DNA of 64,000 bases, taken from positions 1 to 64,000 of the IMG/VR virus record IMGVR_UViG_3300042934_000594, one strand, 5' to 3'. Shown one piece after another: positions 24,591-62,398 of this stretch. Made by a program: the position numbers and the translations under genes. The notes beneath the pieces are model-generated. The model worked only from the letters and a program-made list of their open reading frames with translations. It did no database searches and had not been told where the DNA came from. Position 1 is the stretch's first letter, and each line of letters starts with the position of its first letter.

Positions 24591-24675
24591 GGAGAGGTTC
24601 CCGAGCGGTCAAAGGGAGGGGACTGTAAATCCCCCGTCGTGTACTTCGAAGGTTCGAATCCTTCCCTCTCCACCA
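24591..24675 (+). tRNA. trnY: tRNA-Tyr(GTA)
   Basis: Full cloverleaf: GGAGAGG/CCTCTCC acceptor, gggga-CTGTAAA-tcccc, long variable arm, TTCGAAT, encoded CCA. Confidence 0.95.
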
Positions 24676-24681
24676 TTTCAT

Positions 24682-24760
24682 TGGGGCATAGCCAAGTCTG
24701 GCCTAAGGCAACAGGTTTTGATCCTGTCATTCGTTGGTTCGAATCCAACTGCCCTTACCA
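24682..24760 (+). tRNA. trnQ: tRNA-Gln(TTG), weak 1:72 and 2:71 pairs
   Basis: acagg-TTTTGAT-cctgt, gttgg-TTCGAAT-ccaac, encoded CCA; U1.U72 mismatch. Confidence 0.88.
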
Positions 24761-24765
24761 TTTAC

Positions 24766-24852
24766 GACCCTTTGCCATTGCCCGCGCTTGCCTATGTGCG
24801 AACAGCGCAGGAGGCGTCGCATTAACCCAGCGGTACGTCCGCTGGGAGGGTC
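24766..24852 (+). ncRNA. structured spacer RNA S1 (three-way junction)
   Basis: gaccct/agggtc closing helix stacked on perfect cccagcgg/ccgctggg helix plus an irregular gcct..tgcg/cgca..aggc hairpin. Confidence 0.45.
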
Positions 24853-24860
24853 ACCCTTGT

Positions 24861-25019
24861 TTGAAGCGTTGAGAGCGAGTGGTGGAACATGGTATACGTG
24901 GGGGATAGCATCCCCTAGTCGGGGAATATAGACTCCGGCCGCCTGTCCGTTGGTGCCTTCGTGGTTTGCGGGTTCGAACCCCGCCTCAGAGAGAACGGAT
25001 CATATTCTCAACGCTTCAA
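24861..25019 (+). ncRNA. tRNA-like RNA L1 (Leu-type D-arm and T-arm, rebuilt anticodon and acceptor domains)
   Basis: Perfect 14-bp terminal helix ttgaagcgttgaga/tctcaacgcttcaa; TGGTGGAAcaTGGTATAC D-arm; gcggg-TTCGAAC-cccgc T-arm; no 7-nt anticodon loop, no CCA. Confidence 0.7.
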
Positions 25020-25026
25020 CTTTTTA

Positions 25027-25103
25027 GACGCCGTAGCTCAGTTGGTTAGAGCACTAGCCTGTCACGCTAGGGGTCGAGGGTTCGAGTCCCTTCGGTGTCG
25101 CCA
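25027..25103 (+). tRNA. trnD: tRNA-Asp(GTC)
   Basis: GACGCCG/CGGTGTC acceptor, ctagc-CTGTCAC-gctag, TTCGAGT, encoded CCA. Confidence 0.95.
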
Positions 25104-25107
25104 TATT

Positions 25108-25191
25108 CAACGTAGGGAGAACTAGGGATCATACCCCTAGCCAGTTACTCATGAACTGGTCGCTTAGTCAGGTATAAAGCAATCTACGTTG
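25108..25191 (+). ncRNA. structured spacer RNA S2 (four-way junction with two 7-nt-loop hairpins)
   Basis: caacgtag/ctacgttg closing helix; ctaggg-ATCATAC-ccctag; ccagtt-ACTCATG-aactgg; gctt-11nt-aagc. Confidence 0.6.
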
Positions 25192-25203
25192 TCTTAGTTT
25201 CAT

Positions 25204-25279
25204 TCCATGATAGCTCAGTTGGTAGAGCAACGGACTGTTAATTCGTTGGTCCCTGGTTCGAGTCCAGGTCATGGAGCCA
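25204..25279 (+). tRNA. trnN: tRNA-Asn(GTT)
   Basis: TCCATGA/TCATGGA acceptor, acgga-CTGTTAA-ttcgt, TTCGAGT, encoded CCA. Confidence 0.95.
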
Positions 25280-58400: not shown

Positions 58401-58681
58401 AAGCGGCCCGCCGGCCGCCGTCATACAGGGTGAAACAACCAGGTACCCAAACAGAACGTGACGAAGCTAGAGACCTCTGTGTCTCTAGCGTTCTTCGAAA
58501 ACAACGTTCAGCTGTATAGAGAAATCTAAACAAAAATAACTTAAAAAGTGTATATATAGAGAGGGGGGACCGACACCGGAGGGGGCGGGACCCCCCTCCT
58601 TATTCTTTTATATTTTTTAGAGTTAGTTAGTGGTGATTATCACAGCATGTAGTTATTTAGTTTAATCTCCCAGAGGTGATT

Positions 58682-59656
58682 ATGAACGAAGACCGTAAAC
58701 CCGGTGTACTGCAACGACTCAAGACCGCTGTGCGCAAAGTGTTCAAACGCCCAGCCCCTGAACCCAAGACCTTGGACGACACCGTCAAGCGCAAGGACGC
58801 CATGCCGGAAGCGATGCGTCAACACGCCCCCGAGCGCGGTCCTCTGGAACTGCCTACTCGCCAGATAGGTGAAGTAGAGCATGTATTCTTCACTCAACAA
58901 CCCGCAGACCCATCCGGCGTTACTCTGCACCGAGAGGAGGTTGACCAGGTTCAGTGGTCGCTCGATTGGTTCATGACCACCGCCGTTGCCGACCGGGCTG
59001 CCTTCGAATCGTTTCTGATGGACAACTGGTCGTCCTTCCAGGGCAGTGCCATCACCGATACGATCTTTCGTACCAAGCTCATCCGATCCAAACTCACGGA
59101 TTTCTTCCGCGATCATCCCCAGATGCATTTTGTGTTGCCCAACGAGTACAACGGCATCAAGGTCATCCACTGGGGGATTGCCAAAGAAGAAGACCGCACC
59201 GCATTCATTGAGATGTTCCGTGAGAAACACTGGTTGATCCGTGGGTTCACGCCTATTGAAGCGGATGACTTCAGTTTCAACCAGCCCGATGCGCAAAAAC
59301 AGCTTGATGCCTTTCTGGGCGAGCACTACCTGACTACCGCCGTGCACCCGGAAACCTTGGCCAGTTTCCAAGCGGCGGCTGCGTTGGACCTGAATGCAAG
59401 CCCCGAACCCTTTACGGGCAACCCGTACATCGTGGACCCTAAATCACCGGTCGGTCAGGTGCTGGCCCGGCAGTCGGGCAAGGCTCGTGTACAGGATGCG
59501 GTCGACGACGTCATTGAGCGTCTGGGTGGGATCGTCCCTGATGAAGCCGGGCACGCCAGTCGGGTCACCCCGATGACGGAGAAGCCGGTAAAGTTCCGTC
59601 AACAGGGTCAACCTCGCAACACCCGTAAGAAATCTAAGAAACCTGGTAAGAAATAA
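58682..59656 (+). CDS. hypothetical protein
   Basis: GAGG RBS; basic C-terminal tail. Confidence 0.8.
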   Translation: MNEDRKPGVLQRLKTAVRKVFKRPAPEPKTLDDTVKRKDAMPEAMRQHAPERGPLELPTRQIGEVEHVFFTQQPADPSGVTLHREEVDQVQWSLDWFMTTAVADRAAFESFLMDNWSSFQGSAITDTIFRTKLIRSKLTDFFRDHPQMHFVLPNEYNGIKVIHWGIAKEEDRTAFIEMFREKHWLIRGFTPIEADDFSFNQPDAQKQLDAFLGEHYLTTAVHPETLASFQAAAALDLNASPEPFTGNPYIVDPKSPVGQVLARQSGKARVQDAVDDVIERLGGIVPDEAGHASRVTPMTEKPVKFRQQGQPRNTRKKSKKPGKK

Positions 59657-59665
59657 GGAGTGGAT

Positions 59666-60934
59666 ATGACTGATGAGAAGCGCCCCCTGATCCTGTGGTC
59701 CGGGGGTTTGGATTCAACGTTCCTGATGTACCAACAGCTGCTCAATGGGCCGGTGGATTACATTGTCATGGACGGGGGTCAAAGCCGGTCTAAGATCCGC
59801 ATGGAGGAGGAAGCGCGCACCAAGGCACTGAATTGGTTCGCTGCGCAGGGCCTGCCCTACCCGCATCAATTGAACACGGCCGATCCCATGACGCTGGCTA
59901 AGATGCCCGGCATCAGTTGGTCGCAAACGATCCCGTGGTTGATCGGTGCGTTGTATGCCGCGGACCATCGTAAGCACCACAGTGTGATGATCGCCTACGT
60001 GATCGGTGATGAACCAGTGCACCTGAAGGACGTCTTCAGTCAAACCTTCGAAGGCCTGCAACGGATTTCCAAACACGGTGACCCCGTTCCCCTGTGCTTC
60101 CCGTTCCTGGATGGGTTCGTCAACAAGCGCCGGATCTTGCACGAGATCCCCCGTGGCCTGCTCGAGTGCGTCTGGTACTGCGAGCTGCCTGAGAAAATCA
60201 ACGTCACCCCGTGTCAGTTTGAGATGGTCAGTGGCAAGCGGTGTGAATGGAAGGCTAACGATCAGTTGGTGATTGAGGTCATCCAGGAAGGGGATGTGGA
60301 ACGCGTCGAATTGAGTGCGCTTTACCTTCAACCTGAACACCGGGTGGTCATGCCCGACGGCTCTGTCGAGGTGGTCAGCAAAGCGGTCGAGCAAATCGAC
60401 AACGTGTACATCTGGCAGCGTTGCAATAACTGTCCGGCGTGTGTGACGCATGACCTGGAACTGGTGCGCTATCAGCGCCTGGGTAAACACATCGGCTATC
60501 GCAAGGATGTGGGCGTGGAGGATCCTGTACCTGCCCCGGGTAAAGAGCTGCCACCCCCGGACGCCACCGTGTTCCTGGTGGCCACCGCTGAGCAAGTCTT
60601 GACCATCGCGCAAAGCGGTCTCACCGCCGGCACCCAGTTCCACGCCACCTCAGAACAGGCCGCCCTGGAAGTCAACAACTGGCTGGCGGGTGGGTTCCCA
60701 GGGGACGACATCCGCGTGATCGAAGTGGACTACCATTCGGGCATGCGTGGGCAAGACGCTCCAGCCAAAGACTGGATCTTAGACTGTGCGTTGAGCACAG
60801 GTTTCATCCGCCGCCTGCGCGATCGCAATGGCACCCAACTGCTCTGGCCCGTCCCGTGGGAAGAAACAAGCACCCCGGACGACGTCGTCGAGCAACTCGT
60901 CGAACTGGCAAACACACTCAAAGAGGAGGTCTAA
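59666..60934 (+). CDS. QueC-like PP-loop ATPase with 80-aa spacer in the Zn site and C-terminal ART/Tpt1-like domain
   Basis: ILWSGGLDST PP-loop; WYC...CNNCPAC Zn ligands; extra about 120-aa C-terminal domain. Confidence 0.75.
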   Translation: MTDEKRPLILWSGGLDSTFLMYQQLLNGPVDYIVMDGGQSRSKIRMEEEARTKALNWFAAQGLPYPHQLNTADPMTLAKMPGISWSQTIPWLIGALYAADHRKHHSVMIAYVIGDEPVHLKDVFSQTFEGLQRISKHGDPVPLCFPFLDGFVNKRRILHEIPRGLLECVWYCELPEKINVTPCQFEMVSGKRCEWKANDQLVIEVIQEGDVERVELSALYLQPEHRVVMPDGSVEVVSKAVEQIDNVYIWQRCNNCPACVTHDLELVRYQRLGKHIGYRKDVGVEDPVPAPGKELPPPDATVFLVATAEQVLTIAQSGLTAGTQFHATSEQAALEVNNWLAGGFPGDDIRVIEVDYHSGMRGQDAPAKDWILDCALSTGFIRRLRDRNGTQLLWPVPWEETSTPDDVVEQLVELANTLKEEV

Positions 60935-61263
60935 TGAAACGCATCAAGGATCTGATTAAAGCGTATGCGGTGGCTCCCATCGAAGTGGACCATGATGACC
61001 TGATTGATGGCAACCTGACGGTGTGGTACTCCACCGACGGTACACACGCTGAGCAGCGGTTGCTCAAGCACGACAACGAACCCCTGGCCGAAGGCGATCT
61101 TTACTATGGGTTCATGCCGATCGAAGGTACACAAGTGGCGGTGATGAACTTCCATTACTTGCACAACCTGCGTACCAACCGTATAAGCCCGGCATTGCGC
61201 CAGTGGCCCCAAGGCTTTCGAGCCATCCTCAGCGGCACTGCTTACGTCACCCCCAAGGAGTAA
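60934..61263 (+). CDS. hypothetical protein
   Basis: TAATG overlap, GAGGAGG RBS. Confidence 0.75.
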   Translation: MKRIKDLIKAYAVAPIEVDHDDLIDGNLTVWYSTDGTHAEQRLLKHDNEPLAEGDLYYGFMPIEGTQVAVMNFHYLHNLRTNRISPALRQWPQGFRAILSGTAYVTPKE

Positions 61264-61265
61264 CC

Positions 61266-61361
61266 ATGGCTTCCATGTATGGCATGTACGGCCTTCGTCG
61301 TACCGTTAAATCCAAACCGTTGCCCAAAGCACTGAACAAGTTGCTGGCCCGGGCGAAGTAA
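61266..61361 (+). CDS. 31-aa basic peptide
   Basis: AAGGAG RBS; MASMYGMYGLRRTVKSKPLPKALNKLLARAK*; missed by ORF track. Confidence 0.55.
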   Translation: MASMYGMYGLRRTVKSKPLPKALNKLLARAK

Positions 61362-61459
61362 AGAAACACCCGTAGCAATGTAGTATGTAACAAACCCTTT
61401 CCCTTCAGCCAGACGCGGTGCGTCTGGTTTATTTCCTCACTGTAACTAGGAGTTTCACC

Positions 61460-62398
61460 ATGTCTAAGATCAAAGCCCGTCTGTACAACTGCGGTGGTGC
61501 CGGTACTGACCTCGGCCTGCAAGTGCAGTCGGACACGTTCACCAAGTGCTACGTCGATGCCAGCGACTCCAACCTCAAAGAAGGCATGGACAAAGCAGAC
61601 TGCTTCTTCATCCCAGGTTTGAAAGGATCGGGCAAGAACCGCGCTGAAAACGCCAAGATCATCGCGCCGATCATCCCTGAGATCATGGATGCTCACGAGC
61701 CAGGTGAATTCAACGTCGTGGTGTACTCGCTGGCCGGCGGCAGCGGTTCGGTGATCGGTCCGTACATCGTGCGCTACCTGTTGGAACAGAACCTGCCGGT
61801 GATCTCGGTAGTGATCGGTGTCACCGATTCGGCGACCGACATCAAGAACAGCATGAACACGCTCAAAACCCTGGAAGCGTTCTCGGCGGCTACCCGCTTG
61901 CCGGCGGTGGTCAACTACCACGAAAACGTGTCGGGCCAACCACAGCGTATCACCGACCAGAGCGTACTGTTCTGCCTGGAAGCTTTGGGCGACCTGTTGA
62001 CTCAGGAAAACGATCGTCTGGACTTGATGGACCTGACCAACGCGGTTCAGTTCCACAAGGTCACCCCGATCCCGGCGCAGTTGGCCTACATGGGCATCTT
62101 CGACAATCGTCAGTCGGCCACGCAAGTGCCTGAACCGATCGTCACCGTGTCGCTGTACCAAGACCCGGACAAGAACATCGCCGTGGGTCAACCACACGTG
62201 GCGTACGCCGGTCTGCCGCGCAACGAGATCACCTCCGAGCAGCTGCACTTCATCGTCAACACCGCGACCATGGAACAGATCACCACCGATCTGATCACCA
62301 GTCAAACGGCGTTGAACCAGAAGCTTGGCGGTTACCGCAGTCGTAAGCCGGTGGTCTCGGTCGACGACAACATGGCGGCCGATGGCCTGGTGCTCTAA
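61460..62398 (+). CDS. phuZ: PhuZ tubulin-like spindle GTPase
   Basis: CGGAG, G.GSGK.R, GGGSGS signature, D..D (RLDLMD) T7 loop, acidic C-terminal tail DDNMAADGLVL. Confidence 0.93.
   Translation: MSKIKARLYNCGGAGTDLGLQVQSDTFTKCYVDASDSNLKEGMDKADCFFIPGLKGSGKNRAENAKIIAPIIPEIMDAHEPGEFNVVVYSLAGGSGSVIGPYIVRYLLEQNLPVISVVIGVTDSATDIKNSMNTLKTLEAFSAATRLPAVVNYHENVSGQPQRITDQSVLFCLEALGDLLTQENDRLDLMDLTNAVQFHKVTPIPAQLAYMGIFDNRQSATQVPEPIVTVSLYQDPDKNIAVGQPHVAYAGLPRNEITSEQLHFIVNTATMEQITTDLITSQTALNQKLGGYRSRKPVVSVDDNMAADGLVL

Follow-up and report, generated by a model that had tools for sequence, protein, structure and literature searches.

A lone QueC-like protein of a PhuZ-encoding jumbo phage is an elaborated variant of a known phage singleton class

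Canonical QueC, the 7-cyano-7-deazaguanine (preQ0) synthase, exhibits the motifs SGGxDS, YxQxHxxE, VPxRN and YPDC, the lysine K165 and the zinc motif C(x)8CxxCxxC, and residues Y35, R99, Y131 and Y189 are essential in the Escherichia coli enzyme (Libby et al. 2026, PMC13329287). QueC-fold enzymes of two bacterial anti-phage systems were recently found to attach a nucleobase to proteins. Cap9, which belongs to type IV CBASS (a phage defense that signals through cyclic oligonucleotides), has the signature Y/FxQ(x)5E, RN, H(x)4YxDC, PF(x)4K and CE(x)6CxxCxxCxD; QatC has specific motifs that include C(x)19CGxCxxRR, is accompanied by the QatA ATPase and the QatD TatD nuclease, and has a fully remodelled pocket that still uses 7-carboxy-7-deazaguanine (CDG) (PMC13329287). 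Phage 'QueC singletons' have been explicitly discarded, and the ECML-4 and Muddy proteins were suggested to represent another N-type ATP pyrophosphatase subfamily (Hutinet et al. 2019, PMC6884629). The gene analyzed here encodes a 422-residue QueC-like protein (P0001) at 59666..60934 on the plus strand of the window, a stretch of 64,000 nucleotides that comprises the first 64 kb of the 269,430-bp IMG/VR virus record IMGVR_UViG_3300042934_000594, which is estimated to be ~90% complete.

P0001 is a new, uniquely elaborated variant of this phage singleton class, which is already known and uncharacterised; no functional assignment for the class was found in the literature. The singletons constitute a widespread, unstudied branch of the QueC fold, with more than 200 records that include nucleus-forming jumbo phages and Ackermannviridae, and they have been left aside since 2019. 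Residue comparisons indicate that the branch is not a normal preQ0 synthase and yet possesses a conserved pocket of its own, which makes it a defined target for biochemistry. Among the members seen, P0001 is the most elaborated, and the modules added to it may hint at the target of the enzyme; the family merits biochemistry more than the fusion does.

The QueC-like core and the singleton class

Residues 1-172, encoded at 59666..60181 (+) and ending with the first zinc ligand, C172, comprise a PP-loop ATP-pyrophosphatase domain. The SGGLDS motif occupies residues 12-17 (nt 59699-59716) and is invariant within the phage family. The zinc ligands are C172, which lies in the sequence WYC, and C253, C256 and C259 of the knuckle CNNCPAC. 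An earlier note on the window had singled out both motifs, and both are present as it described. PHROG 1550 ("QueC-like queuosine biosynthesis") matches residues 2-183 with an E value of 5e-21 (5.3e-21), and also matches the relatives P0005 (7e-24) and Noxifer gp027 (6e-26). AlphaFold2 (AF2), supplied with a 10-sequence alignment, modelled residues 1-170 at predicted local distance difference test (pLDDT) values of 80-95. The Foldseek comparison of the separate domains, which the earlier note had proposed, placed Cap9 first for the N-domain (9nto_B, E 5.5e-5) and QueC second (2pg3, E 2.6e-4), followed closely by TtuA, TilS, NcsA, ThiI and LarE (E 5e-4 to 1e-2 for TtuA, TilS, NcsA and ThiI), with QueC 3bl5 lower. 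A profile of the family retrieved QueC 2pg3 from the PDB at E 1.2e-4, and this match covers both the PP-loop and the CGxCxxC knuckle. Because of the PHROG 1550, Foldseek and family-profile matches, the assignment of residues 1-172 and CNNCPAC to a PP-loop (N-type) ATP-pyrophosphatase with a QueC-type zinc knuckle is well supported. P0001 has no match in Pfam (QueC included), NCBIfam or PADLOC, even when isolated pieces are searched at permissive thresholds. Membership of the QueC family, as claimed previously, thus holds at the superfamily level only, and not at the level of Pfam QueC.

In an alignment of E. coli QueC with the phage clade, Y35 corresponds to G37 of P0001, R99-N100 to Q87-T88 and Y189 to P175, and the YPDC loop that contains Y131 is absent. 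In the second motif, YxQxHxxE, the glutamine and the glutamate are kept at altered spacing and the essential tyrosine is lost. SGGLDS, K154 (equivalent to K165) and the cysteine ligands are retained. The phage clade has an invariant set of its own, namely K43, E47, Q87, W91, H104, Y111, D115, P146, K154, C172-E173, C253, C256 and C259, which argues that the enzyme is active and that its pocket is a different one. P0001 therefore shares with canonical QueC (PF06508 cluster 1) the fold, SGGxDS, the type of Cys4 motif, the conserved lysine and presumably the adenylation chemistry. It differs in the replacement of Y35, R99, Y131 and Y189, in a zinc-motif spacing of 80 instead of 8 residues, in scoring below the Pfam threshold, and in the lack of linkage to queD, queE or folE.

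Cap9 (the type IV CBASS protein deazaguanylase, PDB 9nto) is the best structural neighbor of the N-domain, and P0001 also has LxSGGxDS, a zinc motif that opens with 'CE' and an element P(L/F)x4K. In contrast to Cap9, P0001 is phage-encoded and more than twice as long, lacks RN and H(x)4YxDC, and is not accompanied by a Cap10/TGT-like gene; the PADLOC Cap9 model gave no match up to E 1. A Cap9-type operon was not recognized, as the 269-kb genome contains no TGT-family (Cap10-like) match and the neighboring proteins have no Pfam domain, although no search was aimed at CD-NTase. P0001 resembles QatC in its QueC fold, length of ~400 residues, remodelled pocket, lengthened zinc-motif spacing and terminal extensions. 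It differs from QatC in that the specific motifs, CGxCxxRR among them, are absent (CNNCPAC is followed by VTH without RR), PADLOC gives no match up to E 1, and the adjoining proteins contain no KAP or TatD domain that would indicate QatA- or QatD-like neighbors. The comparison with Cap9 and QatC drawn in the earlier note was not borne out at this level, since neither signature is found.

The whole record was scanned with Pfam models for QueC, TGT (a model that takes in DpdA-type enzymes as well), GTP cyclohydrolase I, PTPS/QueD and radical SAM (QueE), and the controls were all positive. No folE, queD, queE, tgt/dpdA or second queC was detected in the 269,430 bp. The absence of folE, queD, queE and dpdA, reported previously for the window, thus extends to the full record, and this genome-wide search, another proposal of the earlier note, did not yield a full dpd pathway. 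TGT and PTPS are likewise absent from the complete genomes of the homolog carriers PA1C, pEa_SNUABM_54 and RsoM3USA. As P0001 lacks the preQ0-essential residues and the phage has no pathway genes, it falls into the phage 'QueC singleton' class. The protein is indeed a lone QueC-like enzyme, but this is a property of a known phage class (PMC6884629) rather than a peculiarity of this phage.

A tblastn search returned 206 phage records, each matching only residues ~1-180/250. The carriers comprise Ackermannviridae (148 Salmonella records and many others), PA1C-like Pseudomonas phages, Ralstonia RSL2/RSF1, Burkholderia FLC, an Erwinia phage, Noxifer and Bacillus SP-15. The nearest metagenomic relatives show 46-53% core identity and occur as short forms of 243-248 residues and long forms of 371-408 residues; the tail of Noxifer gp027 is acidic and of low complexity. 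The existence of short forms, together with long forms whose tails are unrelated, indicates that the ~245-residue core is the conserved functional unit and that the tails are lineage-specific. P0001 has in common with the other phage singletons (PHROG 1550; PA1C QBX32403, Noxifer gp027, RSL2/RSF1, Ackermannviridae, SP-15) the SGGLDS core, the CE...CxxCxxC knuckle, the clade-specific conserved residues and the lack of an accompanying preQ0 pathway, and its nearest relatives are syntenic, near sheath/tube and phuZ genes. The difference lies in the 80-residue insertion and the C-terminal domain, which are found in P0001 only, whereas other long forms have unrelated or acidic tails.

Database records, including that of PA1C (locus L001, 5995-6732), annotate singleton homologs as '7-cyano-7-deazaguanine synthase'. 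This name is probably wrong for the singletons, which lack both the catalytic residues and the pathway. In the Erwinia phage pEa_SNUABM_54 (MW879341.1; locus L002, 5950-6252), the reading frame of the QueC-like ortholog is interrupted by a stop codon immediately behind the PP-loop (SGGLDSTVML, stop), and the annotated gene covers only the part downstream of it, with a later start. The stop reflects either a pseudogene or a sequencing error.

The zinc-loop insertion and the C-terminal domain

The gene is preceded by the Shine-Dalgarno sequence AAGGAG at 59655..59660 (+), 5 nt 5' of the ATG at 59666, and the alternative start GTG at 59660 falls within this ribosome-binding site. Besides the open reading frame (ORF) call and the PHROG 1550 match, codon usage identifies 59666..60934 as coding. 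A log-likelihood measure, for which 103 long ORFs of the 269,430-bp genome served as the training set, favors frame +1 in all segments, with 0.34 bits per codon for the N-domain, 0.38 for the insert, 0.20 for the knuckle and linker and 0.40 for the tail. Values for the remaining frames are negative or close to zero, and GC content at third codon positions is 66-76%. The signal of the insert and the tail is about equal to that of the N-domain, which indicates that both are translated, native coding sequence.

The distance between C172 and C253 is exactly 80 residues (173-252, 60182..60421, +), and the split of the zinc motif reported in the earlier note is therefore exact. The knuckle that follows, at 60422..60442 (+), has cysteines that are invariant in the family. 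The corresponding spacing is 8 in PA1C (C-x8-CxxCxxC) and 8-16 in the closest relatives. As the relatives possess the contiguous form, the split in P0001 represents a genuine insertion, and among the relatives aligned it is unique to P0001. AF2 predicts five β-strands in the insert at pLDDT ~50-60 (30-60 over the insert), so that the segment appears to be β-rich. A phmmer search with residues 176-422 against 1.84 billion representatives retrieved, besides P0001 itself, only a 1512-residue protein of ten Big_2 repeats at E 8.5e-5, a value that is inflated as it sums eight near-identical repeats. Insert residues 188-244 align with positions 25-81 of the 82-residue repeat at 26-30% identity, and hhalign assigned a probability of 50% to the match between the insert and the repeat profile. 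A single Big_2 unit scored 70 against a mean of 22.6 (standard deviation 4.1, maximum 51) for 5000 shuffles, which is not significant at database scale; by extrapolation, a single-unit match of this strength would be expected hundreds of times by chance among 1.84 billion sequences. The insert thus resembles the Big_2 bacterial Ig-like domain in its β-rich character, similar size and ~28% identity to the repeat, and differs from it in that the Pfam Big_2 model does not match and the domain would be without its first strands. An Ig-like, Big_2-like nature of the insert is plausible, and we consider it slightly doubtful.

The insert had also been described as Hint-like. Hint and intein domains are expected to span at least ~130 residues, to begin with a Cys or Ser nucleophile, to end in HN followed by Cys, Ser or Thr, and to match a profile. 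The insert has 80 residues, is followed at C253 by no such junction (WQR precedes the cysteine instead of HN) and has no Pfam match up to E 10, and this assignment was rejected.

Following the knuckle, a helix and a proline-rich linker (residues 260-298, 60443..60559, +) lead to an ORFan C-terminal domain of ~125 residues (residues ~299-422, 60560..60931, +). The word-based search of 5.8 billion clusters and the exhaustive search of 1.84 billion representatives found no relatives of this domain, nor does it resemble any other sequence of the phage's genome or of the related loci. The sole return of an IMG/VR contig scan with its C-terminal half, a 16-residue match in a prophage integrase, was attributed to chance. 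The tails of the long homologs P0003, P0004, P0005 and P0007 were rejected as remote homologs (hhalign probability 0.13), and an atlas search with the P0003 tail gave no usable match. The possibility that the tail exists elsewhere as a separate downstream ORF, through fusion or fission, was also rejected, as the tail shows no likeness to the neighbors of the QueC-like gene in PA1C, RsoM3USA, Taipeivirus, SP-15, Noxifer or the Erwinia phage.

Structural comparisons of the tail point in one direction. Folded alone by AF2 (pLDDT 54), it shows the order β-α-β-α-β-α-β-α. Foldseek with this model returned six Tpt1/KptA entries and the DUF952 protein CC0527 at E 0.4-1.9. An atlas shape search gave DUF952, PTS_2-RNA, DarT and DUF6912 at template modelling (TM) scores of 0.42-0.48. 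A model from ESM was nearest to DUF952 and DUF6912 (TM 0.51-0.57), and ESM features were nearest to PARP, Tox-ART-HYD1 and Arr-ms (0.76-0.78, below threshold). VIA-align against 48,161 chains returned IcmQ, CC0527, TreTu, PltA, pertussis S1 and NarE with Z of 2.6-3.7. The structure search in BFVD, a collection of viral structures, returned nothing. All of these scores lie below the reliability marks of the respective tools, and both models are of low confidence. Most of the named families belong to the Pfam ADP-ribosyltransferase (ART) clan (PMC7955679); for DUF6912, no such membership was found. The tail resembles the small ART domains (DUF952, Tpt1/KptA, DarT), which are the nearest in every search with returns, in its ~100-130-residue size and predicted split β-sheet/α topology. 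It differs from them in having no sequence match, TM scores of 0.42-0.57, Z values of at most 3.7 and an apparently missing His or Arg on the first strand. From the predicted models, we consider it probable that the tail adopts an ART-clan fold of the DUF952/Tpt1/DarT type. The additional domain proposed in the earlier note is thus present as a ~125-residue region beyond the proline-rich linker, and its Tpt1/ART-like nature stands as a lead, as every return pointed to the ART clan and none was significant.

Proposed activity and alternatives

PP-loop enzymes such as QueC, Cap9, QatC, GMP synthase and NAD synthetase adenylate their substrate, after which an amine or ammonia displaces AMP. On balance, we lean towards the view that P0001 is an ATP-dependent adenylating ligase or amidotransferase that acts on a non-CDG or remodelled substrate and is not a preQ0 synthase. 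By analogy to the superfamily, P0001 would bind ATP and adenylate a carboxylate or carbonyl group of the substrate, and an amine or ammonia would attack the adenylated group with release of AMP. As the pocket is remodelled yet strongly conserved in the phage clade, the enzyme probably acts on another substrate or on one that is bound differently. A base-modifying, protein-modifying or counter-defence role, as raised in the earlier note, would be conjectural. That P0001 is not a preQ0 synthase follows from the replacement of the four essential QueC residues and from the absence of the pathway and of a DNA or tRNA transglycosylase in the phage or its relatives, in agreement with the earlier note. 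In this phage, the ~245-residue core seems to have gained two modules, a β-rich and possibly Ig-like domain in the zinc loop and a C-terminal domain of probable ART-clan fold. These may serve as targeting or ligand-binding additions rather than as second catalytic centers.

Several points weigh against this interpretation. The full-length protein and both additions are known from a single metagenomic phage. The alignment with E. coli QueC is at ~23% identity, and residue equivalences may shift by a few positions. By analogy to QatC, loss of the canonical QueC residues would be compatible with a 7-deazaguanine substrate of host origin. The folds of the insert and the tail rest on low-confidence models (pLDDT 30-60 and 54, respectively) and sub-threshold scores, and AF2 performs poorly around the zinc site (pLDDT <50 at 173-188 and 238-252), so that the model does not decide whether the four cysteines form a single site.

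An unlikely alternative is a protein deazaguanylase like Cap9 or QatC, which would adenylate host CDG and attach it to a protein amine, of the phage or of the host, either to regulate a phage protein or to disturb type IV CBASS or Qat through competition for CDG or mis-modification of the host target. The closest structure is that of Cap9 bound to its modified substrate, the 'CE' that opens the zinc motif and P(L/F)x4K recall the Cap9 signature, and the remodelled pocket of QatC that still uses CDG provides a precedent. The gene also belongs to a compact cassette whose other two products are small or variable, one of them ending in a conserved tail, and the locus is hypervariable. However, the PADLOC models for Cap9 and QatC found nothing up to E 1, RN, YxDC and all QatC-specific motifs are absent, a TGT-like Cap10 partner was not found, and the neighboring proteins do not start with glycine.

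Somewhat less probable is an RNA or tRNA modification similar to that of TilS, TtuA and NcsA, in which a base, perhaps in one of the phage's own queuosine-family (GUN) tRNAs, would be adenylated while a Tpt1/DarT-like tail binds the nucleic acid. The fold scores of TtuA, TilS, NcsA and ThiI (E 5e-4 to 1e-2) are nearly equal to those of QueC, and Tpt1 and DarT, the ART-clan families nearest to the tail, act on nucleic acids. ARAGORN identified four tRNA genes in the whole genome, at 24591-25279 (+), for Tyr-GTA, Gln-TTG, Asp-GTC and Asn-GTT, so that GUN tRNAs account for three quarters of the set. Such tRNAs also occur in other carriers: Noxifer encodes Tyr, Asp, Asn and Lys tRNAs, PA1C has Asp, Asn and Tyr among eight, and the Taipeivirus carrier has two Tyr and one Asn among seven. 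In contrast, pEa_SNUABM_54 and RsoM3USA carry the QueC-like gene and have zero tRNA genes, and tRNAs for Asn, Asp and Tyr are common as well among phages that lack this gene. The link between the QueC-like gene and GUN tRNAs is suggestive but not strict. Further arguments against RNA modification are that P0001 shows no recognizable RNA-binding domain (THUMP, PUA or other), that the zinc motif is of the QueC type and not of the TtuA/NcsA type, and that most family members are tailless.

Similarly improbable is a new ATP-dependent conjugation carried out by the singleton family as a whole, for example nucleobase-to-protein ligation or activation of a protein terminus (the RLGG tail of the upstream protein), which would serve counter-defence against type IV CBASS or Qat or the modification of macromolecules of the phage or the host, with the ART-like tail adding a second nucleotide- or NAD-handling site in this phage. 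If the family does represent a counter-defence or new conjugation enzyme, deazaguanylation-type chemistry would extend to the phage side; otherwise, databases should drop the 7-cyano-7-deazaguanine synthase annotation for these genes.

It is very improbable that the tail is an active ADP-ribosyltransferase or Tpt1-type enzyme, which would make P0001 a true bifunctional QueC-like/ART protein. Feature, model and shape searches converge on the ART clan, but their scores are all below the reliability marks, both models are of low confidence, and no Pfam ART-clan family matches P0001 up to E 10. The active-site triad of the clan is located on strands 1, 2 and 5 as H-H-h, H-Y-E or R-S-E, with a His or Arg on strand 1 in all three clades (PMC7955679). 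Inspection of the predicted strands, for which there is no reliable alignment, places neither His nor Arg on strand 1 (VFLVAT) and a single histidine, H326, on strand 2, and there are no homologs to show conservation. The apparent lack of the strand-1 His or Arg renders the catalytic competence of the tail doubtful.

A decaying or non-functional gene, in which the insert and the tail are junk accretions and the split zinc site is broken, is slightly less probable again. Both additions are singletons without relatives, the locus is hypervariable, and the in-frame stop of pEa_SNUABM_54 suggests that the gene is dispensable or losable there. Against decay, the frame is intact over 422 codons, codon usage supports the insert and the tail no less than the core, none of the family-invariant residues, the four cysteines included, is lost, and the gene has a good ribosome-binding site and is tightly coupled to both neighbors. 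An ordinary preQ0 synthase that uses host CDG to raise the supply of queuosine or preQ0 would account for the QueC-type PP-loop and Cys4 motif, the annotation of the homologs and the queuosine-family tRNAs, but is scarcely credible in view of the replacement of all four E. coli QueC-essential residues, the score below the Pfam QueC threshold, the lack of pathway and transglycosylase genes in the genome, and the prior separation of the phage singletons from QueC (PMC6884629).

The locus and its variation

The QueC-like gene is the second of three genes in a compact unit between two terminator-like hairpins. The upstream boundary is a GC-rich hairpin of 8 pairs (7 GC) with a T-run at 58578..58599 (+), and the downstream hairpin at 61407..61429 (+) lies just before phuZ. 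The first gene, at 58682..59656 (+), encodes a 324-residue ORFan without Pfam or PHROG match; it is separated from the QueC-like gene by 9 nt, and its stop overlaps the ribosome-binding site of the latter. The third gene, at 60934..61263 (+), encodes 109 residues, overlaps the QueC-like stop with its start by 1 nt, and likewise has no Pfam or PHROG match. Its product is 67% identical to that of a 107-codon ORF at the same place in the related loci L006 and L007, and no counterpart is present in L004 and L005. A 31-codon ORF at 61267-61362 (+) is visible in the raw sequence between this gene and the hairpin.

The phage tubulin gene phuZ, at 61460..62398 (+), is outside the unit and serves as a marker of context (TubZ_C_2 E 3e-23, PHROG 4733 E 4e-87). 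With the 109-residue ORF between them, the QueC-like gene is located two genes from phuZ, as the earlier note had stated. The phuZ match and a PHROG 2921 neighbor identify the source as a PhuZ-encoding, phiKZ-like jumbo phage. The PHROG 2921 protein retrieves 290 phiKZ-like jumbo phages, the nearest of which is Pseudomonas phage Noxifer at 61% identity; megablast detected no close isolate. Presumably, the phage forms a nucleus.

In the nearest relatives, the gene order is sheath, tube, a 142-residue ORF, a 431-residue ORF on the minus strand, a 303-residue ORF, a variable ORF of 553-573 residues, the QueC-like gene, an optional 107-residue ORF and phuZ. In Noxifer, the QueC-like gene is found one position earlier and has different neighbors. 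The differing partners among the relatives, together with the Noxifer placement, indicate that the locus is hypervariable between conserved flanks, a pattern that would be common for accessory or conflict genes. The 308-residue ORF of the window was considered as a cryptic QueC paralog and rejected, as it lacks a PP-loop and has its orthologs in the 303-residue genes of L004 and L006. Sequence comparison also rejected the long form of L004 as a fusion with the 107-residue ORF.

The upstream protein shares with its 553-573-residue positional counterparts (L004, L006) only the last ~45 residues. This conserved tail, encoded at 59489..59626 (+), runs from RLGGIVP to GHA and is followed by a basic end; it shows 43-47% identity (E ~1e-6) and was not found in isolate phages. 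Its RLGG motif resembles the C-terminus of ubiquitin or of a sulfur carrier. The long partners (L004 6214-7932, L006 6276-7934) begin with a Walker-A-like GxxxSGKT, in a part that the counterpart in the window does not have. Both partners weakly match PHROG 3787, whose function is unknown (E 4e-4 and 7e-5), and family scans of the partners and of Noxifer gp028 found nothing beyond this match.

In two unrelated phages, Taipeivirus KWBSE43-6 (L009 4923-6608) and Bacillus phage SP-15 (L010 4980-6413), a small hypothetical ORF comes directly after the QueC-like gene and precedes a phosphoesterase/phosphatase gene, an arrangement that may represent a recurring module.

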